Counted from the first letter of the stretch, positions 1 to 64,000 are shown. The stretch: 64,000 nucleotides of DNA from Penicillus capitatus (GCA_965649825.1 OZ287697.1:1288351-1352350); one strand, 5' to 3'. A program made the numbers and translations. Notes: generated from the letters alone by a model not told the origin.

Positions 1-222
1 ACCCTCTTCTTTCTCTACCTGTTGGCCCTTTTAGTGACATTTGCGGCTGAGTACCTGAGAAGTGTATTGGTCAGAGAAGGAGTTCACTCATCTTCAGCAA
101 AAGGCACATTTCGCATTCTCCGTGCCTATCTTGTCGATTACCTCTTCGCTCGTGCGATAGCTGCCATGATCCGATGGGTCAACAAAGGAAGATCTCGTCG
201 ATACGGCCGTTCTGCAGTTTAA
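1..222 (+). CDS. 3' end (last exon, partial) of a family member with a class-2 membrane domain
   Basis: Frame 1 is open from base 1 (TLFFLYLLALLVTFAAEYLRSVLVREG...GTFRILRAYLVDYLF...MIRWVNKGRSRRYGRSAV*). It aligns by eye with the C-terminus of gene G (…FAADYLKTVLGRKG…GTFRILGVYFINCLF…MVRWVNKGKSRRYHRPDV*) and with B and H. Confidence 0.9.
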   Translation, partial: TLFFLYLLALLVTFAAEYLRSVLVREGVHSSSAKGTFRILRAYLVDYLFARAIAAMIRWVNKGRSRRYGRSAV

Positions 223-3200
223 AGTTGCTTTGTCGTTTTCAGATCTCTTTCTGTGTATTGGGAATAGGAAGGCGATTAAAACCGTCTCACCTTTCAGTGT
301 TTGACTAGTTTTTGGTACCGTAAGAGGCCATCAACTGTGAATGGAAAGTGTTTAAGCAAAAGTGTCTCTTTGGTGTGTGATTCAGCTGTCGTCCGTCTCG
401 ATGAACGGCAATCGGCGTTTCGTGGATGTATAGGGACAACAGCAATGATTACCTGACTCATACGAGTGACATCTCGAGATTCTGATTCTAGAGAAACTGA
501 GGAGCAGCATGTTCCTAACGCTTCATTGCTTCTCTGGTTTCGCCGTGGTCGAAAGCGAAACTCGTGTCTGTCTGTCGAGTCAGACATATGCAGCATTACA
601 GAAGACTGCATTTCACATGAAGAAGATTTTAGAGTCACATATGAGACACATGTTCGTGACTGAACGCGAGGACGATGAAAAGAGGTTTGTATCGTTGGAG
701 ATCTCGTTCCAAAGGCAACGACTTGAGAATCACACGAACGCATGCAACAATCACAGATGTTCCGCACATGATATCAATCGTGTCAGCTCACGTATATCGG
801 CACAAAAGACCGTGAGACATCAGCAAGAAAGGGAAAAACAAAGCGATGATGCGCCCATCGTCGCACAAGACCCCAGTCCCTGACAGAATGCGAGATCGTT
901 TCGCATGGAGGACTCGTCGTCTTCCACAACATCTTCCTCGTTTCCCTTAAGCAACTCACAGGAGTTGCTACTGTGTTATCTGTCAGCCAGGTTACGCTAC
1001 AGAATGACAGCTAGTTCCAGAGGGGCAGCAATGGAGCCTCACACCATATATGTGCGCCAGAATTGACGCGGGAGAATGGATCCGCGATGATGATGTTTCT
1101 GACGGGCGCACGCACCATGATGCCTCGACCCAACGATGGCAGGGAATTCTTGACACATGGCCGTGGAACGAGGCATGATGTCTGGAAGTGCTCGCCTTCG
1201 AAGTAGACTTCTTTCCCAGAATCGACAGGAACGACGTGTTCACAACGCACACCCTCTGAAAAGACAGTCAACATCAAGACATCCGCAGCGGAGAGCAAAG
1301 GCACAACAATTCGGGATGGATGGCAGAAGTCTTCATTCACACTGTGCATTCAGACCTGCAATCAAGTCGTCAGTCTGAGCCGAAAGAAGAATCGACAAAG
1401 CAATGGGTCACCTTGCAGAGACAGAGCAGAAGGATTGCTTCGAACAGGGTGTATTTGATCGGTGCTAGCTTCTCCGCGCTGTCGGGTGAATTGCGGACGG
1501 CGAGACAAGTCGGTGATTGATTGGCGATCGCGTGTTGGTAGGCCTTTGGCTTTGTGTCCGATTACTCGCTCCATCTGCCGATTGGATGGAAATGGATCTT
1601 TGCGTTTGGCGGTGTTTTGCATACATACGCACAGCGCGCTTGACGGAAAGGACAGCTCGGCCTTCCACTGAACCGCAGTGCCAGCGACAACGAGATACTG
1701 CCAGACTGTTGTTGTTTACCAGCAGAAGGCAAGAGACGCTGCTGTGTCTTCAACGCGACAACGCGGCCTAGGGATTCTGCAGACCGCGTCCTGAAACGGA
1801 AGGATGAGAGGACGGTGATCGAGACAGAACTGGATAAGGATGTGACGCTCTTTGTAAGAGAGGGCGAAATCCTGGTCTGCGGCGTGAAAGGCGACAGATA
1901 ACGGTTTCGCCGTACTGTGCCGTCGAAGACGAAGGTTTAAGCACTGTCACGAGCTCGAGAAAGAATCTGAACTTGTGTCGCTGGTGTGTGTGAATGTTGG
2001 TTCAAAGCCTTGCCGCGAGCTCGGGAGAGAGAGTCTCGGTCGATGTTGTTGGTCGTATATTCACCTGTGAATTCAGTACGGCAAATCTTAAGACGCATAG
2101 TGGTTGCATACGGTTGTCGATTTGTCGTCGCAGCACCAATGCTCCTGTTCGGCTGTGACGAGCGCTGTTTCTCGCTATTGTCTCTTGACAACGCCTAGAC
2201 AGTTTTCATTGTAGCGGATTCAGCAAAAGAAGTGGATGGCGGCGATCTCGTGGTCGTGACAATAATCGTACGATGAGGAAATGTCAGTCACATCGCTCAC
2301 TCACTGTAGGACTGTGGCAGATGAGGGCAGCAGAAACAGAAGCCGTAAGCTGCGTTTGGATTGAACTAGAGAATGGCAGAGATGTGCGACCGCTGGTTTA
2401 GAGCTGTCACATCCAGACGTTCCTTCGCTGCCTGCTAAGAGAGACACTATCCTTCCTACCTGACGTATTCAGCATCCACTAGGGGGACGATCTTTTTTCT
2501 GTGGACGGGACAAACTTGTTAAGCATTTCTTCAAACAACTGTACGACGACAGAAGGGTGGAAATGCGAGAAACCGGTAACCATTTTGCTGTAGCGTACGC
2601 AGATAGAGTCTCATCGCTGCACATCAAGGAGAAAGGAGCCCTCCGCCGTCAAGAAGACTGGCAGTCGACTGCTGTACGAGCAGCAGAATATGGTTTTTGA
2701 TCTTAAGAGAACAATAACCTCCATGGCATTTACGTCTATTAGCTCTTGCAGAAATCCAGTTCTAAGGCAGTGGCTGCCAGATCAAGAGATACAGGTTGAA
2801 AAGAAGAAGGCTCTGTTTACGCTAAAGGCACAAGGTCGTTCGTCGCTTGGCGGCGCGCTTCTAAGTAAACAAGCTGCTCTGCATTGACAAGACAGCTACG
2901 TTTTGTCGATCCGCGAAGAACGGATCTCCCTCGCATGCAGTAGCGGGCCGTTTTCGAAACAAGGTCGCTTCTCCCTCGATTGTTGAGCCAGCGATGCTGT
3001 ATGTGATCCTTTACCTTTCGGCACAGGCGGTGCGCTTGGTCGATGTTGTTCCTCTTCACTAGAACTGAGCTTTCTGTCGCGAATCCCTCCTCCTTGTCCT
3101 GCCATCGTTGGCGCAGCGAGCTGCTAAGACAGAGAGCGTTGAAGCACTTGGCTGTGCAGCCGCGAACGACCAGCCTCTGAAGGCGATGTCTTCAGAGCTA

Positions 3201-4610: not shown

Positions 4611-4659
4611 GATGGTCTGCAGGCGTCTGCTGGATCCGTCTCTCAGTTCTTCGTCGAAA

Positions 4660-7600
4660 ATGCGACGCCGTTTCCTTGGTTTGCTGCTGACGCTCGTCGT
4701 CTTTGGCGCAAGTGCGACCGCGTTCGTCTGCCGGAGGTCTCACCTCCGTCGAGCTTTGGCCGCAGAAACGGCAGAAGATGCCTCGACCACTTATGTTTCC
4801 ACAAAGATTCTTAACTCAGAACCGTCCACAGTCTCAGAAAGAAAGGCATCTGCACCGCCTAGTGCAAAAGAGTCTGCCTCGTTCCCGACGAAGCACTCGC
4901 ACAGTACAGCTCCGCCCCTCACGTCCGAGACGCGCGAGACGGCAAAGAAAGAACGCCCATCTGTGGCTGGAAGCGGTCGGAGTGAGAGCCGTTCTCTGCG
5001 CCAGGACGATGGCCGCGACGATAATCTTACAAGTAAGGAAGGCCCTTTGATGTCTCCGAGAACACCTGCTTGACGTCGGCGCTCTTGGTTTTCGCAGGCG
5101 TTCCTTGTTCGCTCAGCGAACGAACCATCGAAGAGCATCTGAACGAAACGACGAGAACGTGGCGTATCAACCGTACGATTCTTAACGACGTCGAAGATGA
5201 CATCCAAGTCATTGTCAACTGTACGAAGCCAGGCGACGTCCTCTCCTTCAGTCCGAAGCGCAGAATCCAGCCATCCTCTCGCATCGTCATACTGTGGCCG
5301 TTGACGTTGACTGCCCCAGTGAGCAGTTTCGAACTCGAGGAAGGCGTGTTCCCCCGTGCCGATACAAACACGACCTTTACCTGTCCTAACAGAGGAGAGG
5401 GTGTGTTCCTGGTGAAGTGAGCTTCGAATTCCCCCATCCACCGTTGTCTGATGCTGTTCTCGCGCTCAGGTCTAAGAATGTGACATTAGCGAATCTTGTT
5501 TTCGAGGGATGCGATTTCGCTGCGGCGAACAGCAATGAAGACGCCATCGTCAGAGTCGTCGTCGACGACTGTGCGACGACTCGTGCAGACGATCAGCTGC
5601 GTCTGCACCATGTCGATTTCCTAAATAACAGCCTCGACGAGAACAACGCCATCCGAGTGCCCTCATCATCGTGCTTAAGTCTGGAACTCGCTGACCTTGG
5701 TTTCGAGAACAATACCTGCAGCGGTCCATGCATCGTCTTCCCGTCCAATCAAAGCAGTCGGCTGCGCGACATCAGAGTCCTGAACATCACGTCGTCGGGA
5801 GAAGCTGCCGACGCCACGACCGCGTTTTGGGGTCCTCCTGGTTCGAAGATTAACGTCACTCGGCTGACAGCGGCCAACAACGCAATCCAGATCTTCAGCA
5901 TCGAAGACGGCACACTGGTGCTAAACGACTCGAAGCTGACGAACAACAGCGTGAGAGTTGGAAGTCCAGTCTATCTGTCAAAGTCCACTGGAACATTCGA
6001 AAACGTCAGCTTCGCTGAAAACGGTGCCACTCACAGCGCTGGATCTCTCATGTCGGACGACTCAACGATCCGCATAGATAACTGCACCTTCGAGGAGGGC
6101 AATGCCGCCGAATTCGGCGGGTTCGTCGACGCCGAAGAAAATTCTCTGGTGACCATCAGAGACTCGAACTTCAGTCGTGGCAAAGCGAAGGACGGAGGAT
6201 GTCTTCGAGTACATCTCTCAAATCTCACTCTTCATAACGTGACGCTGCGAGAGTGTCATTCCGTGGTCGACGGAGCGGCGATTCGTCTGTCCAATGCGAC
6301 TGCCAACATCAAAAACACTACGCTGGATTCGAACAGAGCGGGCGACGATGGCGGATGCTTGTATGCAGAGTTCTCCAATGTTGCCGGAGACGACTGGACC
6401 GTGAAGAACAACTCGGCTGGCGATCACGCAGGCGGACTCCGGGTGCGACTCGAGACGAATCTCAGTCTCGCCAACTCCGTTTTCCTCGACAACGAGGCAG
6501 ACAGAGGGGGAGCCGTGTCTCAGGAGTTGAATTCTGTCGTCTTTTTCACAGATGTCTCATTCTCTGGCAACGTTGCTGCGACCGAGGGCGGTGCGTTCTA
6601 CATCACCAATTCGACGACGATCCTCAGCAACTGCACTTTCAATGACAGCAGAGCTGATGATGGCGGTATCCTGTTCGCAAGGAAGATGACCACAGTGAAC
6701 ATTTCCTCGTCGATCGTGAGGAATGGCACTGCGAGACGCGGGGGATGCCTGCTCGCTCTCGACGGGTCTGTCAATGTTCAGAACTCGACGATGGAGAATT
6801 GCACGTCCAAGGAAGACGGCGGGGCCATGCATCTGCGCAACATCGCAGCACACATTATGAATTCCGGCTTCCTGTCGAATAGCGCAGAGGATAGTGGCGG
6901 AGCCGTCTTCGCCGATGAGAAGACCCATCTCAAAGGAAATGATTGGATAGTGGAAGACAACAGTGCCTGGGACAATGGAGGAGGCGTTTGGTTGAAGCAG
7001 TCCACGATCCAAGTGAACGACTCTCAGTTTCGAAACAACTTTGCTCTCCACGGCGGCGCCTTCTTCATAGTCGATTCGTCGAAGCTGAATATCTCTAACT
7101 CTACGTTTCGTGGTGGAAGCGCAGAAGACGACGGCGGGTTCGTTGCAGCCATCTCGAAGAGCTCTGTCGATCTGGAGCACACCAACATGACGAATGGAAA
7201 CGCAACGAATGGAGGAGCCGTTTTCCTCTCCGACAGTCTCTTCAAAGGGGATCATCTCAACGTCACCGAATGTTCCGCCAGTTCAACGGGCGGAGGATTC
7301 TCCTTCGAATCCGTAAACGCGGCAATGCTCACAGTTCAGCTTGATCACTCCATCGTGCAGAACAACACAGCTCGTCTAGGAGGTGAGGATACGCAGCCGC
7401 TCTCTCATGCGTCCGATGTGTTTTATCAGGTGGCCTGTATGTGACAAACAGCAGTGGACACCTCAACTGCTCGGAGGGCCACTCCGACTGCTTCCTCGTC
7501 ACTATGCTGAACACGACTTTCGTGAACAACAGCGCTGATTATGCAGGAGGCGCAGTGTTCATGGGCTGCACCCAGAATGTGCACATCGATTGCCCTTCGA

Positions 7601-10099
7601 AGAATGCGGAGAAGACTGGTGGTGTCCACACAGAAAAGCGAAAGCGTTCTGTAGGTAGTCTCAATTCAACAGACGATGTCTGTGGGACATGGAAGAAGAA
7701 CAACGCAAAACAGTATGGTGACGATGTTGCTTCGTTCGCATCACAAGTCAACGTGACCGTCAATGAAAGGGGCATCACAGGTTCAGAGGAGGATGGCCCG
7801 TACATATACAGAAGCGGATCGCCCCTCTCCATCAGTCTGGAGATCCGAGATGGTTTTGATCAAGGTCCTGCGGTGGGAAGGAATGGCCGCGTGGTTTCCA
7901 GCACCATCTCATCTCCAAACAGCCTCTTCTCGGGAAATCAGACAATCCTTTTGGGCTCTCCTTCTACGGAACTCAACGTGACTGGATTTGCGAAGCCTGG
8001 AAACTATACCGTTCTCATCAATTTCGATGAAGACATTCTAAAAGAGGAAGAGATCAATGTCACTGTGCAGAACTGCACGATTGGCGAAGCCTCTTTAAGA
8101 AATGGCACATTTTGCGAGCCCTGCAACGCCGCCACTTACAACGTTGACGTGGATGATGAAGACTCCGAGTGTCGGCCATGCCCCGACAACGGGAACTGTG
8201 CAACGAAAGTGATCGTTCCGAAACAAGGGTACTGGAACAGTTCGCCGTGCTCTCCGCACATCCAGAGATGTCTGACGACCCATGCATGTGATGGCGAAAA
8301 CAGAACCACCACTCTCCAGGAGAAATCAGAGAACATTTCCAACTGTGACATTAGCAAGGAACGAATCGAAGATTACCAACAGGCACAGTGTGAAAAGGCA
8401 AGTTTGATATCCTGATTTTCTCAGGTGTTGATGATCTCTGTTGTGCATGCAGGGTTACACTGGTCCACTGTGTGGATCCTGTATCAGTTCATACGGCAGT
8501 TCCCTGTCTTCCAAGTGTCAAGAGTGTCCTGTGAGAATCGGCAGTGTACTGGTGATTTGCATCTCAGCAGTGATTCTGCTGTTTCTATCCGGCATTACGA
8601 TCAGGGGAACATTGTGCACTAAAAACCGCCAGCGGATGATGCTTTCCGGGCAGAGGCAGATTTCCCGTGGCATTCAACTCTCAGAGCTTTCGATCCGAAA
8701 CATGGCAGAAACTTCGAGAGCAGAGGCCCCTCCTGAGAGTTCACACGAGGTTGAAGGGACAAACGCATCAACAGGAATGGTGCATGTGACTGAAGCGGCT
8801 CTGGCACAATGGAGAGTTACCGAGATGTTCAAGGTGTGAAAATCGTGTACGTTTTCTTCCCTAACAGTGACCGTTGTTGCAGATAACGCTGAACTACATC
8901 CAAGTGACAGTGTTGACTGCAACCTTGAATGTTGGATGGGCATTTCCTGTTCTCAAAGTGGGAGAGATAGCAGGTTATCAGATGTCAATGTCAGCCATCC
9001 GCATCAACTTATCGTCGTTGTTTGCTGTATAGAGTTCATCAGCGGGCTCGCCTCAGAGAGCATCCGGCGCTCTGTTGTCTGTCTGAGTAAAGCGAATCAG
9101 TTCCTTCATCCGACCGTTTGGGGCACGATCGTGAGCGTTTTTGTCGTTCCTGTTACTGCATTCCTGCTGCTCGTCGCATTCTGGATGGTAATGGGACTCG
9201 TCTATCAAATGCAACGGCCACTCCGTTACATCGCACAGAGATCTTTGCTTTCACTCATGGCACTGTGGTACATAACCTCCGCGTCAGTGATCAAGACAAC
9301 ACTCAGCGTTGTTCTCTGCGTTCGTGTGTACAACGACGTTCTGGACGCCACGGCAGAAACCGAAGAGATCAGTTATTGGGCGGTGGACACAAGTCTGAGA
9401 TGCTTCGAGGGCCAGCACTTGATGCTGGTGATCTGGATTCTCCCGTTCGTAAGCATCGTCTATGTTGGACTTCTCATCGCCTTCATCTCAATCCTTACAT
9501 CGCCCAAGGAACTGCTCGACCATCCGGACAGCTGGGTCTATCGGACCACTGGATTCCTGTACCGTGGCTATGGATCCGGATGGCGGCGCTACTGGGAGGT
9601 TGCCATCGTGCTGAGGAAGGCGATCATTGCTTTTCTGGTGTTCTGTGCACACCGCTTTGACAGTCTGTTTTTTATCACATGCCTCCCCATCTTCATCATG
9701 CTCGCGATGGGATTGCAGATTGTGGTGATGCCCTACAGAGAGAAGTTTGATGCTCTGAACAGAATAGATTTGTCTGCCCTTTTCGTCTCGAACCTGACGA
9801 TCTTGATTGCCATCATGCTGAAGAGTGAGGGTCTCACGAAAGAGTGGCGTGGAATGACGCTCTCAATCATCTGCGTTGTTCTCAACATCTCAACCTTCCT
9901 CGTTTTTCTCTGTTTTCTTGTTAAGTACTATGCCAAGTGCATTAAGCTCTCCATGAGCGAATGCGGAACGCACATCGATGCAGATGCCGGAACACTGAAG
10001 ATTCTGACGATCTGGCTGGGATGCCGTCTCCAGTCCTTAGCTTCCTATGTGAGACTTGGCCAGTCTCCCGATGAATCAAGTTTTTCTTCCGGCGTGTAA
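4660..10099 (+). CDS. Gene A: beta-helix (GGA-repeat) + Cys-rich + multi-pass membrane receptor-like protein, 1703 aa; helix type alpha, stalk I, membrane class 1
   Basis: Exons 4660-5032, 5098-5416, 5470-7382, 7430-8397, 8453-8833, 8883-8973, 9033-10099 (5112 nt, phases consistent). Introns are GT..AG except 8398-8452 (AAG|GCAAGT..CAG). Features: signal peptide MRRRFLGLLLTLVVFGASA; repeated GG[A/C/F]xx..N motifs; CEPC..CRPCPDNGNC..GYW.SSPC..CLTTHAC; hydrophobic segments with GFLYRGY..YWEV..LRK. Confidence 0.88.
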
Positions 10100-19202: not shown

Positions 19203-20644
19203 AGTTGCTACATTATGTTTCACATGTATTTCTTTGTGGTGGGAATGAAAAAGGAGATCGACGCCCTCCTCTTTTCGTCGCGTCAATGACATCCGATATC
19301 AGAAGAGGACTTCGATTGTCGATGAGTTTAAACAGATGTGTTTAATCGTATCTTTGCCGGTGTCAGACGATTCTTTTCGCTGTTCTCCTACTGTGGCAGG
19401 TAATCGCCGACACAGATCCTCGGAGACCATGTATAATTGGTCGTGCTTGCAGCCCCTTTTAGGTTAAACATCAGAGGCGCGACTGTGTTCAGTACAAGAC
19501 CAACGATCGACAGGCACAGAGACATAAATGACCAAGGCGAAGAATGAACGAAATGTGTAGGATAGAGTCCTCGGATACCATAGAGGAGCCAATCAATCTG
19601 TATGTAGGCCATCAGATGCATGACAAACCACGTTTGCGTTTATTTGTTTCTATTTTTGCAAACTTTCATTTGCAGTCCCAGTCTTGCTAACAGAAGAACC
19701 ATTGTCGGCAAGGAGAGCATGCATTCAGACAAACGCGTGAGACGCGAGACCATTCGGCTGCATAAAGCGTTTGCGTAAAACCCTTCACTCGCATATACAG
19801 AGTCTTGGCATGGAATGTGCCTTGTTCACAGTTATGACTCGTTGCTGTAGAGTACTTAAAACCATTAACCAGAAACGCACAGAATTACTGTCGATTCTGC
19901 ATCGACTTTAAACGGCTTAGCTGTTCGCCGCGGTCGGAGGTATAGAAATTGTGCTCTGTACTGTACCTTGTCCAAAATCAAATCTATCACTTCGGTCCTC
20001 GCACGTGCGTGATGTATGTCTGGTACGAACATTCATGAAACCAAATCATGAAGTTTGCTCGATACTGAAAAAGAGTGGTCTCAAGCTATTCAAAGCATGG
20101 ACGCAGATGACCGCATATTTATTTAGGACATGAACCAAGGGCATGGAAGGCCCCACCTTCCATGCAGTGTTCCACCGTGCGGTTTTCCATACCCGAACTC
20201 CATAACTGTTGAACTAAATGATAAATAACGAGGTGCCTGGAGCACCACAGCCCTAACTGAATCTGATGTTCTCCTTATGATGCGAGCAAGCTGCATAGGA
20301 GAAGGCACTGATCCACGAGCGATAGTACTGTGTATCCGGTCAAAAACGGCAGAATGCGCATAAACATACGAAAGGCATACCTACGGACACATCTCCGTCG
20401 GATGCTTTGAGTTGCAGTCGACCTGCCTCATCTTCAGGCAAGGCATCGGGTTGGATGGAACTCCGAAGCGATGGGCTTTCACGTGTCCTTACACTTGCCG
20501 TGGACTACTGTTGGTCACTGTTTCCTTAAAAAATCTGCTTCCGTTCTCTCGAGGAAGACCGTGGACATGTATATGTGGTGCGAGGCTAAAACGAGTGAAC
20601 GAGTGCCTTCGGTGCTGACACTCTAAATGCACAGCCTCAGGACA

Positions 20645-21045: not shown

Positions 21046-21098
21046 ACGGAGAGTCTGTAAGCGTCTGCAGGATACGTCTCGCAGTCCTTTAACGAATC

Positions 21099-42321: not shown

Positions 42322-42469
42322 AGTTCAAATGATGTCAAGTCAAGCACGAAGCCGATCTGTACAGACAATTGACGATGTACTGTTTCAAACAGGAAAGTTC
42401 AAATGATGTCAAATCGAGCACGAGGTCAATCTATGCAGATAATCGATAAAGTGAAGTTTCAAACAGGAA
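42322..42469. repeat. Diverged 2x74 bp tandem duplication in the 3' flank of gene G
   Basis: AGTTCAAATGATGTCAA occurs at 42322 and 42396, and both units end in GTTTCAAACAGGAA. Confidence 0.8.
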
Positions 42470-42533
42470 AGGGACCTTTTCCAAAACTCAACGGTAAGAG
42501 ATGGTAACGGATGAAGAACAGTGTAATGCAACT

Positions 42534-54200: not shown

Positions 54201-57200
54201 GTTCGGAAGTCTCACTTCACAGATGGATCTGCAGAATTTGGTGGAGCAATCCACTCATCTTCTTCAGATGTCTCCATCCAGAAGACTGAGGCTCTTCGCA
54301 TGTTTGCCAGTGAGCAAGGCGGTGCTGTCTACTTCTCCAACTCTATCTTCAAAATAATCAATACTCAGATTTCACAATGCGAGGCAGGGACCGATGGGGG
54401 TGCCATTATGGGCAATCGTTCATCGAAGCTGCTTTGCAGTGGCTGCACTTTGATCGACAACAATGCAAGTCGCGGCGGAGCTATATTCTTCGAATACAGT
54501 GACACGCAATCCATTTCCATGCAACTGGACAACAGTATTCTTCGGAACAATTTAGCCGAATATGGAGGTGTCCTTGACAAGGCAAACAACAAGAGATGTT
54601 CACGCTGATGTTTTTTAGGAGGGATCCAGATCGCCGCCGAAATGTTGTCTTTGCTGCAAAACTGTCGGACAGAACAGGATGAATGTGGAGTCGCAGTCAT
54701 GGCGAACACTACTCTGATGGATAACAAAGCACGGTCGGCAGGTGGTGCCGTCTTCATTGACACAGTTGCTGCTCTCCGACTGAACTGCTCAGACAGATCG
54801 AAAGAGCAAGGACTGGAATTCTATCCGGAAGAAGAGTGGAAGACGATAAAGCGCCTAGTATCCGTCGACGACATCTGCACATCCTGGGAAAACAACACAG
54901 CCGAGAGATACGGACCAGATGCGGGAACCTCTGCATTCAATGTTCGAAAGGAGATCGCCGATAAAGAGACTGGATTGCTGAGATTGGTACAGGAGAGTAG
55001 TTACACCATACTCAACCACAGAAGCGGAGAATCATTTCCCCAGATCATCTTAACACTAGTAGATGAACTCGGACAAGGCCCAGCTGTTGGAGAGAACAAT
55101 AAGGACATCAAGGCCGTGATGTCTTCGCCGGATGGATTCTTCGTTGGAAGTGTTCGCAAGCCTGTGGGCATCGAAGGCGCAAGACTCAGTGCCAAAGGCT
55201 TCGTGCAGTCTGGTAACTACAAAATTCTGATCGTGTTCGAGGGAGCAGACCTGGAGAGCTTCGAGATCACTGTGGAGGTGAAGCCGTGTGACATTGGTGA
55301 AGTTCCTTCCGGAAATGGGACATTCTGCGTATCTTGCAACGTCGCCTCTTACAGTTTCTCCCCAGAAGAGGATGCCGAATGCCATCCGTGTCCAGAGAAC
55401 GGAGACTGCAGCAGTCAAGTCATCCTACCAAACAGAGGATACTGGCACCAGACACCGTGCTCAGAGCACATCCAGAGATGTCTCACAGAAGAAGCGTGTG
55501 ACAGTGGCAACCGTGAAGACGCGTTATCAGAACTCACACAAGATGTGCAGACGTGTCAATTCGACGATCAGTACCTGCAGAACTACACAGAGGCGCAGTG
55601 CAGAGAGGTGAGCATCGTGCTTGACTATGGACTGCCTCAAGTGTCGTCGGGGTCTCAGGGGCATGAAGGGCCACTCTGTGGATCGTGTAAGGAATCCTAT
55701 GGCAAATCTCACTCCCATCTCTGCGAGAAGTGCCGTTCAGATGGCATCAGTGTCGTCCTAGTCGTCCTGTCGTTTCTTGTTCTGTTGGGGTTGGCCAGCA
55801 TTACCGTCAGAAGCAACCTTCTCTCAGCCTATTCGTCTCAGCAACAAACACAAGGTTCTCAGTTTTCTGCTGCCTCCACCAGCACTCGAGCAGTTCCAGC
55901 CGAGAGAAGAATAGAAATGACAGTCGTGGAGGCGATCACGGAAGGAGGCTCAACTCCGGACATTCCTCAAGAAGCTGATCCTGTTCAGTCTTCTGAAGAC
56001 GCAGAGCTCGCAAAATGGAAGGCCGTCGAGCTCTTTAAGGTCACACTTTTCTCTGTTGCCTACTGTGTTGATTCATCTTAACTGTGTTGCAGATCACAGT
56101 GAACTTTCTGCAGGTCACCGCCATAGCGATCGCTGTTGATGCACAGTGGACATTCGCATTGATCGCACTCTTCCGGACTGCAGGTGAATAAGAAACAACT
56201 AACTCTGTCCATCAGTTCCATGACACGTGGTGTGTTCTGCAGAGTTCGTCGGCGCCATCACATCGGAAGCTGTGAATCGATCCATCGACTGCCTTGTCTC
56301 GGCAGAAACTTCTCTGCAGCGATCAGTCGTTAGTACACTGGTGGATGCATTGCAGCCGATTGCATGCATCCTTGTCTTTATCGTTTTCTGGCTGCTGATC
56401 AAGATCAGACGCAGCGAGTCGTGGACTTACCTGTTGAGGAAGTGTGTCCTCAGCTCTCTGGTCGTCTTCTACATCAGCTACATGTCTGCCACCAAGACAC
56501 TCATCAACATCTTTAACTGTGTCGAAGTCCACGATTCAGCAACAGTTGGAATCGATGAGACAACAAACTACTGGGCAGTGGACACCGGCGTTGAGTGCTA
56601 CGAGGGATCGCATGCCGCGCTAGCTTACCTGTTGGCATGGCCATTCCTCGTCATCTTCACTGTTGGGTTTCCGCTCTCCATCGCATTCCTGGTTGTCAAG
56701 AAGGTTACAGGAGACTACAAGGATGGCTGGATCTACGAAGTCAGCGGCTTCGTGTATCGATCCTTCAGTAAGAAGTTCATTTTCTGGGAAACCGTGATCA
56801 TGATCAGGAAAGCCTTGCTCGTTGTGGTGATCGTTTTCTCTTATGAAGTGGGGTCTATCATCCAAGCTGTTCTGGCCTCCTTCATCCTGATCATGGCCCT
56901 TTACCTTCAGACCAAATGTCGTCCTTACCGCGTGGAGTTTGATTCTCTCAATGATGTGGAGAGTCTTTCCATTACGATTTCGTCTCTCACGTTTATCTTC
57001 AGCACATTTTTTGGAGTCGATCACGTGTCGGATGAGGTTCGTGTGCTCATCAGTGTTCTCTTGTGCCTTGCAAACGTTTCTTTCTTTCTTTACCTCCTCA
57101 GTCTTACTGCCGTCTTTGCAGCCGAGTACCTCAAAACTGTACTGGCTGGGGAAGGAATTCGTATCTCGTCGACAGATGACACGTTTCGAATTCTCACGAC

Positions 57201-57297
57201 GTATTTGATTGATTACCTGTTCATGAATGCGAAGAATGTCATGACGAGATGGGGTCAACCTGCCAGATCTTATCGCTACCGTCGTCCTGAAGTTTGA
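51300..57297 (+). CDS. Gene H: same family, 1890 aa; beta-type helix with a 235-aa duplication, stalk III, membrane class 2
   Basis: Exons 51300-51678, 51739-52057, 52109-54567, 54619-55607, 55659-56039, 56093-56183, 56243-57297 (5673 nt). All introns are GT..AG. Confidence 0.88.
52815..54224 (+). repeat. In-frame internal tandem duplication of 705 nt (235 aa) in the gene H beta-helix
   Basis: AATGAAGCTTTC occurs at 52815 and 53520. Both units carry SRLVVMDSFLEKNLA..TGGC..LD.SSNLTMSSTVMMNNTADYGGAL.LEGN.SGNVINSTF.MN.ASTSGGAAYVE.SLISVQKCQFA.GSAKFGGGI. Confidence 0.9.
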
Positions 57298-58769
57298 AGT
57301 GGCTTCATCATGTTTTACATGTCGATTTGTGGCGGGTGAAGAAAAGCGATCGTAGTTCTCTCCCCTTGTTGTTGTCAATGACGACGGGGTTCTCAAAAGA
57401 ACAGCAACTGTCGATGAACATGTGTTTAAGGAAGAGTGTCTGGGTGTTTTTTAATTATTCTCTCCAACATCGTTTTCGATACGCTGCGATCACCGACTGC
57501 TCGATGCAGAATGTATAGGAAGATTCTGATTCTGACACCTGCAGAACGCAGCAGGTTACAAAAGAGCATCTCCTTTTCGGATTCTCTGTTTGGAGAGAGG
57601 GAATACCTGTCGACTGCGACGACTTCTGTGTCGTTGCAGACGTTTCGTGGTGCGTGTCTGATGAAAAGAATACGAGTGCCCGTTTCCAACACGCAAAGTG
57701 TGACGAAGTGCGAGAATGTCTGCGGCGCTGTCGCAACGCTGTATCGTCGTAGATCTCACTCAAGGACAGGAGTATCGCCTGCTAGTGCATTCTCAGAAGC
57801 AGACAACGCGTCGACTACAGACTCACGCGACAGAGATCTTACAAAGTTCTTTCAATCTGAGAAGTAGACTGTCATGAGACTCGACTCGATCCTTAACAGA
57901 GCGCCACTGTTGCAGCTGAGCGTTTCGTTTTTGAAATCACCTAACGCACTATGTGCGTATCAGAAGCAGAGCTTGCGAATGCGGTGCTATGTCGGTCGCT
58001 CTGGATGCAGAAGCCCGTTGAGTGATGGTACACGGTCCGCTTGTCAGGACACTGCACAGAGCAGTAGCTTCCTCATGGAAACCGAACTTTGCGAGGCCTT
58101 AGTTTTGGACTTTCATTGGAGATCATACTGTCGCCGTCATCGTCGAGGTCCGAGTGGCGGTGGTGTGAGCGATCTGATAGTGTTGGAATCGGGAAGCGCT
58201 GATGCGACAGCAAAGAGAATGCTGTGACGCTCGCGCGTAAAGGCCTTTATCTGACTGCTGTAGAAACTCGAATTCTAGAGAGCTTACCTCACGCTGTCAA
58301 AACGCTTGCGACATTCTGTCACGAGTCTAGAGCCTGCCACAGTTTCAGGTTGACAGGAAGTACACGCAAAAGAGCGGAGCGACTCGCAATGTCCGTCGTG
58401 AAAAGACGTGCCTACCGAAGACACCCAAACAGTCGCGTGAAGAAAAGAAAACCACGATGCATTTCTCGCCGTTCACGCAATGCGCTTCAAATCCCAGTAG
58501 TGGATATCGTACTTACTGTAAACAGACTTTCGCATAACTGTCAAAGCTTTTATAGGTGCCGCAGGCAAGCTCGTTGTCAGGCAGACTGTCATCGCGTTGT
58601 TGTTATGGTTACTACTGTAAGGTTCCAAGGACAATGATAGAGGTGACAGGTAGTACTTACCTCATGATGAAAAAATCGAATCCATTCCACAGAGGAATTG
58701 GTTCAAACCGATTGAGATTGTTGAGTGTCCTAGGCGTGACCTTTCTCCAAATTTCACTTTCACGACGAG

Positions 58770-61700
58770 ATGGCCCTTACAACAACCTCTCGTTTTCGTC
58801 TCGTCTTGTGGATTCTTGCACTTCTGTGTTCTCGTAACACCCTTGCTGAACCAGCAGTAAGCTCGGAGGTTAACCGACCCGCGTCGACGAGGAGTCGAAA
58901 TCCCAGTGACGAGTTCGATGTTCGTCCACACTCTGTTTCTCGACGAACGGCTGACGATTTTGGCACTCAGAAACCACGCTTCACTCGGCATCTGTTGCAG
59001 GAGGACACCGACAGTTCGAAGACAGGTAACCGTTTGAGGCAACAGGCGTTTTGCCATATCCATTTGTGTTTTCGTAGACTACCTCTGCTCTATTCAGGAA
59101 AATATGACGGAGTATCTTGATACGGCCACACGAACGTGGCGCATTGATGGTGCTGCTCTCAACGCGATTGACAACGACGTGCAAGCCATCGTGAACTGTA
59201 CGACAGAAGGCGACACGCTGCTCTTCGACGTCGGCGTCGTCATTCGGCCGCGAGCTCGAATCACGATTCCGTGGAATCTGACGATCAGCGCAGCGACAGG
59301 CAGGACTCGAAGAGTGAACGGCCTCTATCCAAAAGCTCCTCAGAAGGCGACGATCACATGCCCCACCGAAGGAGAAGGCGTCTTCCTCGTGAGGTGAGCT
59401 CAAAGTCCTCAATGTGGAGGCACTGTCTGACCTTCTTTCTCTCCAGGTCTAAAAGTGTCCTCTTTGCGAATCTCAGATTCGAAAACTGCTCTCTTCGAGG
59501 TTCGTCTGGATCCGAAGCCATCGTCCAAGTCGAGGAGTGTCAGTTCAACAGGACACAAGACGCTGTTCAGCTGCACCACGTTAGCTTCGAGCGCAACACC
59601 TTGATCGACGCAGCGGCTCTCTCAGTGAAGGGTCCATCCTGTGCCAGACTCGAACTGGTGGACTTCGAATTCTCGGACAGTGACTGCGGTGGTCGGTGCG
59701 GTGTGACGCTGTCCGCGCAGAACCGACTGCGGAACATCCGCATTCATCAGATCCGTTTCTTTGACTCAGCCAACAGGAGCTCTACAGTCTTCTACGGTTC
59801 AGACGGGTCAGAGACATCCATCAAACGCATGAACGCAACAGAGAACGAGTGTTCCCTGTTGCATGTCGAAGGAGGCACCCTGAATGTGTCAGACTCTACA
59901 TTCCTCGAAAACGACATGTACAGCACAAGGGAGAACGATGTGAGGTTTTGCATTCGACTGTCGAACTCGACTGGGTCTATCCAAGATTCTCAGTTCCGTC
60001 GGTACAAAGTTCGAACAGGAAGCGCCGTTACTGCCACAGCGTCGAACTTAACGGTGATTGGCTGTGTCTTTGGGAACAACGTGGCAGATGAAGCCGGAGC
60101 CATTCGCCTCGCTGCCAGCTCGGCATCTATTCGCTCGTGCAACTTCTCCTCCAACGAGGCCATCTTATCTGCTGGCGTTCTGATGGCATCCGAGTCTCGA
60201 ATCACCGTCAGCGATTCCATCTTCGAAGCAAACGAAGCAGAACTCGATGGCGGCTGCTTCTATCTGAAATCGGCGAGCAACATTAGTCTGATTCGCTCCA
60301 GTGCTTCACAGAACGCAGCCCGCAACGGCTCCGTCGCCTTCCTCGAGAAACAGTCGAGTGGGAGAGTCGTCCGTTCTTTCTTTGGCAACAACTCTGCTAC
60401 CTCGAACGGAGGATCCTTCTTTGCAACAGACTCCAGACTCTCCATTCGGAGATGCCGCTTCGAGAATGGCACAGCCGAATCTGGCGGAGCCATCTTTATG
60501 GAGTCCGAATTTCCTGGGTTGTTCGTCAACGTCACTTTCAGAAATAACTCTGCAAACTTCAGTGGTGGTGCCCTCCACTTGAAGACGGCGAATGCGAATC
60601 TGATCCGCTGCCACTTCGCTGAAGGTCGCGCTGATCGCGGCGCAGAACATAGATGCAGATACGGAGGCTTTGTGTACGCACACCTGAGCTCCGACGTAAC
60701 GGTCAGCGAGTCGGTAATGGAAGACGGTGAAGCAACAGAAGACGGCGGCTGTCTGTTTGCAAGAAACTCGACGCTGTCCATTGACAAGCTGACCATGATA
60801 AGATGCAATGCTTCCGAGAACGGAGGCGGTTTGATGGTGCAGAACATCTCATCGGCAGATCTGAAGAACATTGAAATCCGTTCAAGCAGAGCCAAACATG
60901 GAGCAGGAATCTATGCCGAAGACTCGAAAGTTATTGGACGAGGATGGATCGTGACGGATAATGAAGCTTTCCGAGCAGGAGGAATGTATGCCTTGAGATC
61001 AAGTGTCGCCGTCAAAGACTCCGTCATGCAGAACAACACAGCAGAATTTGGAGGAGTGCTTTGCCTACCGGAGAATTCTACTGGTACCTTTGTCAACGTT
61101 ACCTTCAGAAGAAACTCGGCGAAGCAAGATGGAGGGACGTGCCACGTCGAAGGTTCCGAGCTCGTCGTTCGGAAAAGTCACATCACCGAAGGATTTGCTC
61201 AGAACGGCGGAGGAATCTTCGCATTGTTTTCAAGAATCTCAATTCGGGAGACCACGGCGTTTAACCTCGCTGCAGCAATGTATGGTGGTGTTATCTCTGG
61301 CAATGCTTCCGAGATTCGCATGCGTCACTGCTCAGTCTTGAACAACACAGCTGCTGGTGGAGGTGTGCTCCAATGCCATCCTAACTGCACATTCACAGAC
61401 ACAGAATCGAACTATTCTCGTAACTCAGCAGAGTTTGGCGGCGCTATCAATCTAGACGAGAACTGCTCGGGAAGCATCAGCGGCTCCAAATTCGACAAGA
61501 ACAACGCTTTCAAATATGGAGGCACGATCTACCTTGGAGCGAGCACTTTCAGTATAAGCCAATGCAACTTCTCCGAGAGCAATGCTACGTGGGGAGGCTT
61601 CATCTACGCAACCGAAACGAGAATGAACATTTCCAATTCGAACTTCAAACAGGGTTCAGCCGACTACGGTGGCTGTACCAGAGTAACTGAAAGCAAAGTA

Positions 61701-64000
61701 AACCTTCAAGATGTTAAAATTGCATCTTGCAGAGCCCGATCTAATGGAGGAGCAGTGCAATTGTTGTCCAATTCTGCTGGTACCTTGAAGAATGTATTTT
61801 TTGTCGCGAATTCTGCACAGTTAAGCGGCGGATCTATCATCGTCCAAGAATCAAATGCCAGTCTTGATCATTGTACTTTTCAAGAGGGCCATGCAGAGAA
61901 CGGTGGATTACTAACGATTGCCGAAAGTGGGAGAATGAATATGCGCCATTCTGTGCTCCGGAATAGCACAGCGAAGTGGGGTGGATGTGTGCGATGTGAA
62001 GGAGGAAGCATTGACATCCAGAATGTGACAATGGAAGAATGTCTAGCAGAGTTGTCAGGAGGAGCAATCAGAATGGCATTCTCCAGCGAAGCCGCAGTCC
62101 AGAACTCTGTCTTTGTGAGAAACCATGCGAATAATGGCGGAGGCATTGCTTTAGTACAATCATCGTCGCTATTCGGAGATGGTTTGCTCTTCGAGAACAA
62201 CACTGTTCATGAGGGTGGCGGGGCACTTGCTTCTGAACAAGCGAGCACCATAGAGATAAACAGCTCCGTTTTCCAAAACAATGCTGGCGGCGATGGAGGG
62301 GTGTTGATCCAGCACACCAACACTACTGGGATCTTTACGAATGTCACGTTTGTCAGGAATCAGGCCTGGCGGAAGGGAGGAATAGCCTACGCAACAGAAT
62401 CTAATATCAGTTTCGATCGGTGTGTCTTCGAATGGAGCATCGCAGCGGAGCACGGCGGCTTTCTCTATTCGCAAAGAAGCGTGCGTTGTCACTTTAATGG
62501 ATCGGTGTTGATCCATGGCTTCTCGCGGGAGGGAGGATGCATCGTCGTGGAGAAAGGGAATCTCACGTTGCAGAAGACATCCATCCATAACTGTATTGCA
62601 TCGAAGGATGGAGGTGCACTGCATTTGTCGGAAGGCGCGAACGCGACAATCACTGATTCAAGCATCGACGCAAGTCATGCTGGCGAACACGGAGGCGGTG
62701 TTTACATGTCACGCAGCTCTCTCAGTGCAAACAGACTCCTTCTCACTGAAAACATCGCAAAAGGCGACGGGGGTGGCATCTTCTCGGAACACTCTACTGG
62801 CATCAGAATTTTCAACGATTCCTACTTCGGGAACAATTCTGCGCAGTCCGGTGGAGGCGTGGCATTGAGAAACACAACAGGGTCCTTGATCGGCGTCAGA
62901 ATCTATGGCAACTTGGCATCGAATCGTGGAGGGGCCTGTTGCGCAGAAAGCTCTTCTAACCTGAGGGTCGTAGAATGCACAATCCGTCACAGTGAGGCCG
63001 GAAGCGGTGGCAGTTTCTTTGTCCGGAAGTCGCATTTGAAGCTCATAAGTTCAAAACTCAAAGCTGGACGGGCTTCCGCGGAAGGAGGTTTCATCTCAGC
63101 TACGGAGAACAGCTCGATCCGTGCGGACACCACATCGATGATTGCTGGCGTATCGAAAGAGGGCGGCGCTGTTTTCCTCTCTGAATCTGTCTTCACAGCC
63201 ACGGGCATTCGGATATCGCAGTGCAAGGCAGACGGCGACGGGGGTGCCATCAAGGGCATCGATTCGTCGAGGATGCTCTGCAGTGGCTGCACTCTGAACA
63301 ACAACAACGCAACCCGCGGTGGAGCTGTGTTTGCTATGTATAACGACACTCGAATGCTCTCGATGCAATTAGACAACTGCACTCTCCAGAACAACTCGGC
63401 AACATTTGGAGGTATTCTCGATCACACTAGGGTTAGAGTGAAGTTCACATTCTTCCACGCAGGAGGCGTCCAGATCGTGGCCGGACCGGAGTCCGTATTT
63501 CGGGACTGCCGTGCGGGATGGGACACTTGCAAAGTTACAACTTTGATGAACACAGTCTTTGCAGACAACGAAGCAAAGGCGGCTGGCGGAGCCGTCTTCA
63601 TCGACACAGTTGCTGGACTCCGACTGAGCTGCTCAGATGAATCGGCAGGACATGGACTGGAGTTCTATTCGGAGAAGCGGTGGAAGTCCATGAAGCGCTT
63701 GACATCCACCGAAGACATCTGCCCATCCTGGAAGAACAATTCAGCTGGCAGATACGGACCAGATGTGGCATCTTACGCATCTGATGTCCTAAAGAAGGTC
63801 ACCAACAAAAAGACAAAATGGTTGAGTCCATCAGGCAAGAATCATTACACCATACGCCGCCACAAGAGCGGAAGACCGATTCTCATCGCTTTCACACCCG
63901 TAGACGACCTCGAGCAGAGTCCAGCTGTCGGGATGGACAACAACAACATCGAGGCCGTGACGTTTTCGCCCGATGGATTCTTTGTCGGAAGCGTGAGAGT
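58770..64000 (+). CDS. Gene I (runs off the window): same family, longest beta-helix (exon 3 = 3965 nt)
   Basis: Exons 58770-59025, 59078-59393, 59447-63411, 63463->64000. I translated the frame starting at 59448 by hand and found no stop codon up to base 64000 (intron 3 is 51 nt and stop-free), which probably explains its absence from the ORF track. Signal MALTTTSRFRLVLWILALLCS; RHLLQED motif; continuous GG-repeat helix; stalk motif SWKNNSAGRYGPDVAS. Confidence 0.85.

Follow-up and report, generated by a model that had tools for sequence, protein, structure and literature searches.

The 64,000-nt stretch of Penicillus capitatus DNA analysed here, hereafter the window (GCA_965649825.1 OZ287697.1:1288351-1352350), carries eight genes and four relics of a single seven-exon family, whose products place Pmp-type repeats ahead of a multi-pass membrane module. 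This array is probably a repertoire of putative sensor-channels with diversified ectodomains, built on Pmp rungs and a PF06011-type domain. It is presented as an undescribed candidate sensor repertoire and not as a proven immune locus; its novelty lies in the domain architecture, the birth-and-death and gene-conversion mode of evolution being already familiar.

Organization of the gene array

With six complete copies (A, B, C, E, G and H), one copy leaving the window and one truncated copy, the tally agrees with the initial annotation, in which at least ten copies or relics of a seven-exon gene had been counted. Each complete copy has seven exons and no internal stop in the spliced CDS, with intact frames of 4.8-5.7 kb across six spliced introns and predicted proteins of 1599-1890 aa. 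The spliced models reproduced the regularities noted initially: introns of 47-67 nt occupy the same positions and phases in all copies, exon 2 measures 319 nt in five complete genes, 322 nt in G and 316 nt in I, and exon 6 is 91 nt long in all six complete genes. The variation of exon 3 was also as described, with lengths of 1598 (E), 1670, 1913, 1994, 2459 and 2462 nt in the complete genes, 1613 nt in D and 3965 nt in I, each equal to 2 modulo 3, so that the reading frame is always preserved. GC replaces GT as the donor of the fourth intron in A and E and of the sixth intron in B and G, four introns in all, and the stop codons TAA, TAG and TGA are all in use across the copies. These intact multi-exon CDSs bear out the view that the genes are eukaryotic and spliced. 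The array goes on well past the window on the same contig; its tandem copies probably cover more than 160 kb of a eukaryotic nuclear genome, the window being one section of them.

Gene H, the reference model, lies on the plus strand at 51300-57297 (1890 aa; exons 51300-51678, 51739-52057, 52109-54567, 54619-55607, 55659-56039, 56093-56183 and 56243-57297). On the same strand are gene A (4612-10099, homologous ATG at 4660; 1719 aa; exons 4612-5032, 5098-5416, 5470-7382, 7430-8397, 8453-8833, 8883-8973 and 9033-10099), with repeat alpha, a chimeric exon 4 and membrane type 1; gene B (13995-19202; 1628 aa; exons 13995-14376, 14434-14752, 14806-16475, 16525-17516, 17568-17954, 18012-18102 and 18157-19202), with repeat beta and membrane type 2; and gene C (21099-26463; 1677 aa; exons 21099-21471, 21534-21852, 21906-23899, 23947-24926, 24979-25185, 25243-25333 and 25394-26463), with repeat alpha, a G-like exon 4, a short exon 5 of 207 nt and membrane type 3. 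Gene I, also on the plus strand, runs from 58770 to beyond 64000, with exon 1 at 58770-59025, exon 2 at 59078-59393 and exon 4 from 63463; its exon 3 (59447-63411) encodes 1321 aa and ca. 40 rungs without a stop. The minus strand carries gene E (38904-33769; 1599 aa; exons 38904-38574, 38508-38190, 38137-36540, 36487-35499, 35443-35063, 35013-34923 and 34859-33769), with repeat beta, an exon 4 that switches from B/H-like to A-like and membrane type 1, and gene G (48383-42534; 1841 aa; exons 48383-48134, 48066-47745, 47689-45228, 45179-44215, 44160-43780, 43726-43636 and 43588-42534), with repeat gamma, a C-like exon 4 and membrane type 2. Intron 3 of G (48 nt) is in frame, which accounts for an unspliced, bacterial-style ORF of 1185 aa.

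The truncated gene D (32355-29527, minus strand) consists of exons 1-3 (379, 319 and 1613 nt) and 117 codons of exon 4 followed by a stop. Its 887-aa frame comprises a signal peptide and the repeat region and lacks the membrane module; the truncation initially described stands, and for the copy then called soluble two readings apply, a secreted form or a pseudogene. Relic F (ca. 40930-39697, minus strand) retains exons 5-7 with membrane type 3 and a 124-nt exact match with C, but exons 1-4 are absent, a premature stop is present and the cysteines of the GxxGPLCGSC motif are lost. Further remains are a membrane-module end of 60 codons at 40-219 (plus strand; 55% identity to residues 297-356 of the H module), belonging to a gene mostly upstream of the window, a membrane-module relic 3' of gene C (26608-26976, plus strand; 36.5% identity to residues 195-320 of the H module), and an exon-2 relic downstream of D (29010-28858, minus strand). 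The family has undergone tandem gene duplication and decay.

Predicted proteins, their algal relatives and the membrane module

In H, a signal peptide and an N-terminal domain are followed by ca. 24 Pmp rungs, a stalk, a Cys-rich region, a first membrane helix, a linker and a membrane domain of 8-9 helices. The Pmp-type GG repeats proposed at the outset were confirmed by matches to PF02415 (Chlam_PMP) of 47-49 bits against a cut-off of 20.6, and both the Cys-rich region and the multi-pass module were indeed found downstream of them. Each exon 3 encodes 13 to ca. 40 rungs of 26 aa, for which 149 rungs yielded the consensus N.AA..GGA[IVL], and the ectodomains carry 23-51 N-glycosylation sequons. 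Each gene would give rise to a large type-I-like membrane protein with a small N-terminal domain and a cytosolic linker, the rungs being presumably folded as a right-handed beta-helix. Among the window proteins, Chlam_PMP alone passed the Pfam threshold, no catalytic family reached it and no immune-type signalling domain was found in the domain search; paralogues on related contigs displayed weak Beta_helix (PF13229) and NosD matches.

The ten named full-length top matches all came from Caulerpa lentillifera or Bryopsis sp. KO-2023; judged from these best homologues, a siphonous green alga of the order Bryopsidales is the most likely source. Spliced H aligned end to end with gene models of these algae at 28-33% identity over up to 1947 columns, and the alignments were gapless across exon junctions. 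The whole architecture is common and collinear in Caulerpa lentillifera (EukProt g3776.t1, g3968.t1, g397.t1 and others) and Bryopsis (GMH38983.1), including the N-terminal domain, Pmp rungs, stalk, GY.G.LCGSC Cys-rich region, membrane helix, linker, ..INFLQV.. helix and membrane domain. Although they belong to other genera and are unnamed or "hypothetical" in the source gene sets, these homologues are, judged by their sequences, members of the same family, which is not unique to this locus. No such family is mentioned in the Bryopsis and Ostreobium genome preprints, the Halimeda genome paper or the bryopsidalean phylogenomics preprint. The GC content of the window is ca. 50%, next to 52.4% for the diploid Ostreobium genome. 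A bacterial origin is ruled out by the spliceosomal introns and the collinear Caulerpa and Bryopsis proteins.

An exhaustive profile search with the membrane domain recovered 7983 representative proteins at E<=1e-3. PF06011 was matched by 19 of 64 family members (best E 7.3e-13), one of them reaching 35.5 bits against a cut-off of 28.5, while the window's own membrane modules gave no direct match, falling below Pfam detection. Through this transitive link by profile-found relatives, the module is classed as a predicted divergent member of PF06011, the fungal Pkd2/Flc/TrpR "TRP-like" family. The "receptor-like" membrane module of the initial annotation is thereby retained as multi-pass and refined to a divergent TRP-like domain; with such a module, the proteins have the appearance of receptor-channel fusions and not of kinase- or NLR-type receptors. 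AlphaFold2 modelled the membrane domain as an all-helical bundle (pLDDT 90.3). Its ca. 350 aa keep (near-)invariant Cys, Trp and charged residues across ca. 30% identity. Three (near-)invariant cysteines occupy two places in the model, immediately ahead of the first long helix and in the hairpin loop that follows the second one, and we read both places as probably facing one, extracellular, side. Foldseek found no match to this confident model among solved structures, canonical TRP and polycystin channels included. The label "channel" is hence owed to the fungal precedent only, and yeast Pkd2 is itself termed a putative channel.

Mosaic genes, rung duplication and selection

Per-exon identities reproduced the module classes initially recognized, and these classes differ along the gene: repeat exons group as A with C, B with E and H, and G alone; exon 4 is closest between C and G (86%) and between B and H (81%); and membrane modules unite A with E (89-92%), B with G and H (74-75%), and C with F. 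The module shuffling claimed earlier was further supported by max-chi2 breakpoint tests, with p<=0.0005 for five triplets (chi2 272-936; none of 2000 permutations reached the observed value). Breakpoints fall mostly inside exon 4 and not in introns, so that repeat-exon, stalk and membrane modules recur in differing combinations, and the short contig L009 and other parts of the contig hold further combinations. Gene A is exactly identical to C over 277 nt (7261-7537 and 23778-24054, both plus strand), a stretch that runs from the last part of exon 3 across intron 3 into the beginning of exon 4 and is read as a probable recent conversion tract. Their similarity stops ca. 200 nt past this tract, near 7700-7750, and exon 4 of A is itself chimeric, with 91-100% identity to C over ca. 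300 nt and ca. 50% afterwards. At its 3' end, in a breakpoint region at 8250-8400 (plus strand), identity shifts to E, reaching 81-97% from there through the 3' flank as against ca. 45% upstream, in exon 3 and the greater part of exon 4. The initial scheme of A as alpha/I/1 therefore holds for repeat alpha and membrane type 1, but not for a single-class exon 4. Taken together, these patterns demonstrate exchange between paralogues, by homologous recombination or ectopic gene conversion.

Rung gain and loss, also anticipated, has left traces in three genes. Exon 3 of B contains a 228-nt unit twice in tandem (15452-15912), that of E a perfect 78-nt unit repeated 3.2 times (36623-36869), and that of H an internal duplicate (52800-53099 and 53505-53804) with copies 705 nt apart and 90% identical. 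Rungs have evidently been duplicated in tandem and in frame inside exon 3.

Pairwise dN/dS lay between 0.41 and 0.54 for exon 3 and between 0.21 and 0.32 for the membrane module, and ranged from 0.13 to 0.55 over all modules and the haplotype comparison; no value above 1 was obtained among window paralogues or in the L004/L005 haplotype pair. All modules are thus under purifying selection, with the repeat exon less constrained. Since dN/dS is below 1 in every module, gene-wide positive selection is unsupported. Polymorphism between related genomes was seen. L009, which overlaps the window, is polymorphic relative to it, and at a sister locus the haplotype-like paired contigs L004 and L005 (12x and 13x) differ by a replaced tract of ca. 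2.5 kb in exons 3-4 of one gene, with a divergence of 9-22% against a background of 1-2%. The high dS in this tract (ca. 0.5) points to tract replacement and not to adaptive point change.

Possible functions and known systems

We expect the proteins to span the plasma membrane and to expose the repeat region on the outside. If fission yeast Pkd2 is a guide, binding to or pulling on the ectodomain would be coupled to cation (Ca2+) entry, with wall polymers, microbes or other surfaces as candidate partners. The diversity may be of use in immunity, in self-recognition or in sensing the wall. A surface repertoire would be in keeping with the biology of siphonous algae, whose giant single cells house bacteria and need to seal wounds. 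We nevertheless consider it unlikely that the array is a repertoire for immunity, allorecognition or gamete recognition, in which rungs form a variable ligand surface like LRRs and diversity is kept by selection. The birth and loss of tandem copies, module shuffling, the wide range of rung numbers with very recent duplications, the confinement of the hyper-divergent L004/L005 tract to exons 3-4 and the higher dN/dS of exon 3 are all compatible with this reading, but no comparison exceeded a dN/dS of 1, the dS of the tract indicates divergence that was imported or old instead of amino-acid driven, families devoid of a recognition role likewise undergo concerted evolution and gene conversion, and immune-type signalling domains were not found in the domain search.

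We give little credence to a role as wall or matrix hardware, with repeats binding or modifying wall polysaccharides (pectin-lyase-fold- or carbohydrate-binding-like) on a multi-pass anchor, in a dosage-driven family whose variation is largely neutral concerted evolution. A conserved membrane domain of 350 aa exceeds the needs of an anchor, and Chlam_PMP as the sole Pfam match at threshold leaves no catalytic family, even if the abundant sequons, purifying selection throughout, the PF13229 and NosD matches typical of the pectin-lyase-like superfamily, and the ties of fungal PF06011 proteins to cell-wall synthesis and integrity (PMC8618638) would suit such a role. An artefact, be it assembly chimeras of near-identical paralogues, a pseudogene graveyard or bacterial (chlamydial) contamination, is highly improbable. 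The contig was assembled from a metagenome at 13x, its end cuts through a further family member, and the perfect 78-nt triple repeat of gene E could be assembly stutter; yet six copies have kept intact frames over six introns each with dN/dS well below 1, paralogues 5-50% apart are too divergent for collapse, junctions are gradual changes in identity without abrupt joins, and other module combinations lie on contigs assembled separately. A repertoire of putative sensor-channels remains the reading we favour.

In their evolutionary mode only, the window genes resemble plant NLR/RLK clusters and other receptor arrays that evolve by birth and death, with which they share tandem arrays, pseudogenes, repeat-number change and paralogue exchange leading to mosaics; those clusters have another repeat type and signalling module, and the positive selection on binding surfaces typical there was not detected in the window genes. 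Animal polycystin-1 and PKDREJ, with a huge modular ectodomain, a multi-pass channel-associated region and roles in mechanosensing and calcium signalling, are a functional analogy only: no homology to polycystins was detected, and the membrane model had no polycystin or TRP match in the PDB. Chlamydial Pmps have in common with the window genes the GGA[ILV] and FxxN repeat type (PF02415) and a multigene family, and their passenger domains are predicted beta-helices (PMC11166332, PMC10715098). They are bacterial outer-membrane autotransporters with a C-terminal beta-barrel, in contrast to the alpha-helical eukaryotic multi-pass anchor and spliceosomal introns found here. Trichomonad Pmp-like proteins, borne by a parasite, span the membrane with one helix that leads into a short tail, and are not known to have a channel-like domain or an exon-module mosaic. 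These Pmp-like/BspA-like families are expanded eukaryotic surface proteins with Pmp-type repeats and a proposed role in adhesion (PMC6701047).

The only functional precedent comes from the fungal PF06011 proteins (S. pombe Pkd2, Trp1322 and Trp663, S. cerevisiae Flc1-3, A. nidulans TrpR and C. neoformans Flc1), which have a homologous multi-pass domain by the transitive Pfam link and the same order of signal peptide, extracellular N-terminal domain, multi-helix membrane domain and cytosolic tail. Membrane stretch makes fission yeast Pkd2, a protein with an extracellular domain at its N-terminus, permeable to calcium (PMC9727806), and PF06011 proteins have roles in calcium homeostasis and cell-wall integrity (PMC8618638). 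Three such genes are present in S. pombe and four in A. nidulans (PMC8618638), and recombining tandem arrays of them are not described in these fungal studies (PMC8618638, PMC9727806). In most fungal TrpR homologues the ectodomain is of the TRP_N (ML-like) type, thought to recognise lipids (PMC8618638), whereas in the algal proteins its place is taken by Pmp rungs, stalk and Cys-rich region totalling 1100-1400 aa, to which an extra membrane helix and a linker are added.

Gene structure and content of the window

The window is even in composition (GC 45-55%, about 50% overall; published values are 52.4% for Ostreobium, 45.9% for Bryopsis, and 40.4% for Caulerpa) and carries long, bacterial-style ORFs of four recurring kinds, namely a leader with a small domain, a long GG-repeat, a stalk/Cys-rich region, and a hydrophobic stretch of about 350 aa. 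TBLASTN searches with four pieces of one copy identified eight genes and four relics, distributed on both strands. The model of gene H (51300-57297), obtained by reading its exon junctions, comprises six short introns and a CDS of 5673 nt (1890 codons) free of internal stops, and was transferred to the other copies by an H-guided splice-site scan combined with inspection. The six complete copies (A, B, C, E, G, and H) all have intact frames encoding 1599-1890 aa, each interrupted by six spliceosomal introns, and intron sizes are 47-67 nt. Exon 2 of these copies measures 319 or 322 nt and exon 6 is 91 nt long in all six, while the repeat exon, exon 3, spans 1598-2462 nt in complete genes and 3965 nt in gene I, which leaves the window at its right end. 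Since every exon 3 length equals 2 modulo 3, the frame is always preserved, and the use of TAA, TAG, and TGA at gene ends indicates the standard genetic code. Hydrophobic N-terminal leaders were found on the encoded proteins. The rederived gene and relic counts, exon sizes, and frames agree almost to the nucleotide with the gene description of the initial annotation.

Incomplete copies complete this picture. Gene D consists of exons 1-3 and 117 codons of exon 4 followed by a stop, and encodes an 887-aa product that has a signal peptide but lacks the membrane part. Copy F is a decayed relic of exons 5-7, and three smaller fragments occur besides. In the type-3 membrane modules of C and F, the cytosolic linker that connects the first membrane helix to the exon-6 helix is mostly missing; in the other types this linker is variable and of low complexity. 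Exon 5 of gene C (24979-25185) measures 207 nt, versus 381-387 nt in the other copies.

Four of the 36 introns, at two of the six intron positions, begin with a GC donor. These are intron 4 of A (8398-8452, forward strand) and of E (35498-35444, reverse strand), which share the donor GCAAGT, and intron 6 of B (18103-18156, forward strand) and of G (43635-43589, reverse strand), whose donors form the pair GCGACC / GCGAGA. They were recognized by inspection, a GT-only splice scan placing all four introns wrongly. The share of GC-AG introns seems high; the annotation pipeline used for Ostreobium presumed that green algae have no alternative splice sites.

No tRNA gene was detected in the window, and none of the intergenic frames of at least 110 aa looks coding, all having by eye the appearance of chance frames. 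Two antisense ORFs, at 31417-32343 (forward strand, 308 aa) and 56620-57396 (reverse strand, 258 aa), overlap opposite-strand exons of D and H, respectively, and were set aside as chance frames in GC-balanced coding sequence. Intergenic tandem repeats occur directly downstream of D (28184-28371, 1.9 units of 97 nt) and of G (42322-42471, 2.0 units of 74 nt).

Database searches revealed that all 10 of the best relatives looked up derive from Caulerpa lentillifera (EukProt entries with no descriptive name) or Bryopsis sp. KO-2023 (annotated as 'hypothetical protein'), and that these relatives share every architectural part. Judged by these best homologues, the window probably derives from a bryopsidalean green alga, perhaps similar to Ostreobium, which also fits the GC content and the paired contigs and DCD-domain gene described below. 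The H protein aligns with C. lentillifera gene models over nearly its full length (up to 1947 columns) with 28-33% identity; the Caulerpa alignments are gap-free at the exon 3/4, 4/5, 5/6, and 6/7 junctions, and those with Bryopsis at the 4/5 and 5/6 junctions. The family is therefore not unique to this locus, and is already present, functionally unannotated, in published Caulerpa and Bryopsis gene sets. No description of the family, or of its combination of Pmp-type repeats with the PF06011 membrane domain discussed below, was found in the papers searched, including the Bryopsis, Halimeda, and Ostreobium genome papers; 11 'TRP-CC' genes are listed for Ostreobium, which may or may not belong to this family.

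Module exchange, rung duplication, and variation between related contigs

Per-exon nucleotide identities conflict between modules. From exon 1 to the first part of exon 4, gene A most resembles C (83-95%), and its exons 5-7 are closest to those of E (89-92%). The copy nearest to C in exon 4 is G (80-86%). Gene E pairs best with B and H across exons 2-4 (about 80%), yet matches them at only about 62-65% in exon 7. Sliding windows along the genomic sequence place the switch points inside exon 4. The similarity of A to C extends from the 5' flank to about 300 nt into this exon, where it falls from more than 90% to about 50%, and that of A to E begins at the end of the exon and continues into the 3' flank. 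Maximum chi-squared analysis of five triplets gave values of 272-936, with none of 2000 permutations as high (p ≤ 0.0005). Moreover, 277 nt of A (7261-7537) are identical to C (23778-24054) across intron 3, in surroundings that diverge by about 5%, and are read as a recent conversion tract.

The repeat exon is built of 26-aa rungs with the consensus ..F..N.AA..GGA[IVL]....SS.. (149 rungs), gene E having the fewest (about 13) and gene I the most (about 40). Exon 3 of E contains a perfect tandem of 3.2 units of 78 nt (36623-36869) adding 26-aa rungs, which is explained either by rungs gained very recently or by a stutter in the assembly, while gene B has a 228-nt tandem in two units and gene H a duplicate located 705 nt apart and 90% identical. 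These comparisons show that homologous recombination or conversion moves modules (repeat exon, stalk, membrane) between copies, and that in-frame tandem duplication alters the number of rungs. Both the gene structure and the recombination are near certain, and the shuffling of modules between copies that had been proposed at the outset is upheld by per-exon identities, sliding windows, and maximum chi-squared analysis alike. Tandem paralogues, pseudogenes, and exchange between copies, the combination by which birth-and-death evolution with gene conversion is recognized, are all found, making the array an example of repeat-protein diversification by rung duplication and module exchange.

The array continues beyond the window, whose contig corresponds to ctg340394_13x_l (576,620 bp) in the ENA assembly ERZ25074695. 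Further members lie on this contig 24-45 kb past the right end of the window (locus L007), 30-50 kb past its left end and reaching the contig end (L006), and at record position about 78.8-100 kb (L005). These additional copies contribute new module combinations: in one, the repeat exon is of alpha type and the membrane module of type 2, and another is 80% identical to H in exons 3-4 but 95-98% identical in exons 5-7. A gene with a DCD domain, which is mainly a plant domain, occurs nearby. The contig end (L006, 1-962) falls within another family member and carries no CCCTAAA telomere repeat, leaving a subtelomeric location unsupported; the array probably extends past this point and broke the assembly.

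Locus L004, on the 12x contig ctg340204_12x, is collinear with L005 at 96.9% identity over 21.2 kb, and these paired 12x/13x contigs are probably haplotypes; Ostreobium was reported as diploid. Against a background of 0-27 mismatches per 500-nt window (0-5%), five consecutive windows of L005 (13979-16479, about 2.5 kb) show 46-112 mismatches each (9-22%) with no indels. This tract corresponds, in one family member, to exon 3 together with the first part of exon 4. Its dS of up to about 0.5, with a dN/dS of 0.41, implies that the tract was replaced, rather than separated by amino-acid substitution, the source being either conversion from a diverged paralogue or the retention of an old allele. 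Diversity of the repeat proteins thus already differs between two close genomes. A second case is provided by L009 (ctg222858_20x, 7666 bp), compared here with window positions 17565-24067. It matches 17565-21558 at 96%, covering exons 5-7 of B, the spacer, and exon 1 of C. About 400 nt in the region of exon 2 and intron 2 of C are absent from it, and its exon-4 pieces resemble gene A (88-92%). L009 represents either another haplotype or a segmental duplicate of recent origin in which modules are combined differently. A full second haplotype of the window was not found in searches of 90% clusters, which recovered L009 only. Polymorphism at the variable module, as anticipated by the initial annotation, is therefore seen at the sister locus L004/L005 and on L009.

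Two other records deserve mention. Several family members occur on a 46.6-kb contig flagged as circular (ctg296184_87.61x_c, locus L003, sample ERZ26696514), where they adjoin a Ty3/gypsy-type pol ORF (RVT_1, RNase H, integrase); circularity is odd for a eukaryotic gene array and may reflect an assembly loop through repeats. In the same sample as the window, the 6.9-Mb contig ctg340592_344x_l (L002), also deposited at NCBI, carries a diverged member, 49% identical in its membrane module and adjoining an ABC1/UbiB gene. The L002 genome is far more abundant (344x), so the sample contains at least two related algae or genomes.

Ectodomain and membrane module

The only direct Pfam match of the window proteins is Chlam_PMP (PF02415), detected in G and H with 46.9 and 48.7 bits, respectively, against a gathering cut-off of 20.6. 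Based on the repeat type and on published predictions for Pmp proteins, the repeat region is presumed to fold as a right-handed beta-helix. The region ahead of the first membrane helix contains 23-51 N-glycosylation sequons, and Pfam searches gave no match to the autotransporter domain in these proteins, nor to TRP_N or ML domains in their ectodomain.

The membrane module was more difficult to place. A Pfam scan of the C-terminal 837 aa was empty, the window copies gave no match to PF06011, the fungal Pkd2/Flc/TrpR 'TRP-like' family, even at E ≤ 10, and word-index protein searches, for which the membrane module, its profile, and exon 4 served as queries, returned unnamed metagenome ORFs only. 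An exhaustive profile search with the membrane module retrieved 7983 representative proteins at E ≤ 1e-3, many of the best matches being proteins of 1500-3400 aa with the module at their C-terminus. Among 64 diverse family members, selected with the window-based profile at E ≤ 1e-49, 19 matched PF06011, with a best E-value of 7.3e-13. One of them, P0207, exceeded the gathering cut-off (35.5 versus 28.5 bits) and was the sole member to do so; others scored 15-27 bits at profile positions of about 190-403, and the Bryopsis protein GMH38983.1 matched weakly (E 0.047). With the window copies themselves giving no match, the link to PF06011 is transitive, and it is by this route that the membrane module appears homologous to the PF06011 domain.

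Members of PF06011 have been associated with calcium homeostasis and wall integrity (PMC8618638). Fission yeast Pkd2, a protein of unsolved structure whose N-terminal domain is extracellular, was found to be calcium-permeable under membrane stretch when reconstituted (PMC9727806). An AlphaFold2 model of the H membrane module based on a 64-sequence alignment (m6928c9669b71) reached a pLDDT of 90.3 and a pTM of 0.83, an 18-sequence alignment having given a poor model (pLDDT 66). The confident model is all-helical, with about eight long helices. Invariant or nearly invariant cysteines occur directly before the first long helix and in a beta-hairpin loop after the second, and in our reading of the model both sites would face outwards. 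The predicted topology is Pkd2-like, with a signal peptide, an extracellular N-terminal domain, a multi-helix membrane domain, and a cytosolic C-terminal tail. Foldseek comparison of this model with 350,542 PDB chains returned nothing at E ≤ 0.001, the weak matches included neither TRP nor PKD2 entries, and the PDB yielded no match to sequence or profile queries either. The membrane module thus gave no structural match to the canonical six-helix fold of TRP channels and polycystin-2, and the 'TRP' label of PF06011 may not reflect a TRP-channel fold.

A putative surface-sensor family and its relation to known systems

Caulerpa, Bryopsis, Halimeda, and the coral-skeleton borer Ostreobium belong to the bryopsidalean algae, giant single cells with many nuclei that survive wounds, regrow from extruded cytoplasm, and host dense microbial partners. 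The family combining Pmp-type repeats with a Pkd2/Flc-type module could be a candidate surface-sensor system of these organisms. Its members would be cell-surface proteins that expose the Pmp repeat region to the exterior, and binding to the ectodomain, or mechanical load on it, would lead to cation entry by analogy with Pkd2. We consider a sensor of this kind, coupled to a channel, the somewhat favored reading, the chances being about even for channel function itself. The little-understood PF06011 family, studied so far in fungi, would then reach green algae with a very different ectodomain.

The purpose of the diversity may lie in the recognition of microbes or non-self, in a range of wall ligands, or in largely neutral concerted evolution. 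Pairwise Nei-Gojobori estimates, restricted to pairs close enough to align, gave dN/dS ratios of 0.54 (A-C), 0.41 (B-E), and 0.41 (L004-L005) for exon 3, 0.13-0.38 for exon 4, and 0.21-0.32 for exons 6-7. With values below 1 everywhere, the genes are functional and the repeat exon is their least constrained module. The initial annotation had expected positive selection, but these pairwise comparisons of few alignable copies revealed no gene-wide signal, including on exon 3 as the putative binding module; individual sites may yet be under such selection. We regard an immune or allorecognition repertoire specifically as unlikely. Similarly doubtful is the broader proposal that siphonous green algae possess a large recombining repertoire of 'ionotropic' receptors, in which a hypervariable beta-helix ectodomain would directly gate a calcium-permeable domain of the Pkd2/Flc type and ectopic gene conversion among array members would generate allelic diversity. 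If this were true, the recognition of microbes, foreign cytoplasm, or wound surfaces would give rise to a calcium signal with neither a kinase nor an NLR in between, and the array would represent a non-LRR, channel-coupled analogue of the variable immune and allorecognition receptors of plants and animals.

In contrast to the chlamydial Pmp autotransporters, the algal proteins end in an alpha-helical multi-pass region instead of a beta-barrel and are encoded by genes with six spliceosomal introns. Unlike PF06011 proteins with a TRP_N ectodomain, which is ML-like and thought to recognize lipids, they carry Pmp rungs, a stalk, and a Cys-rich region. They evolve in the manner well known from receptor arrays.
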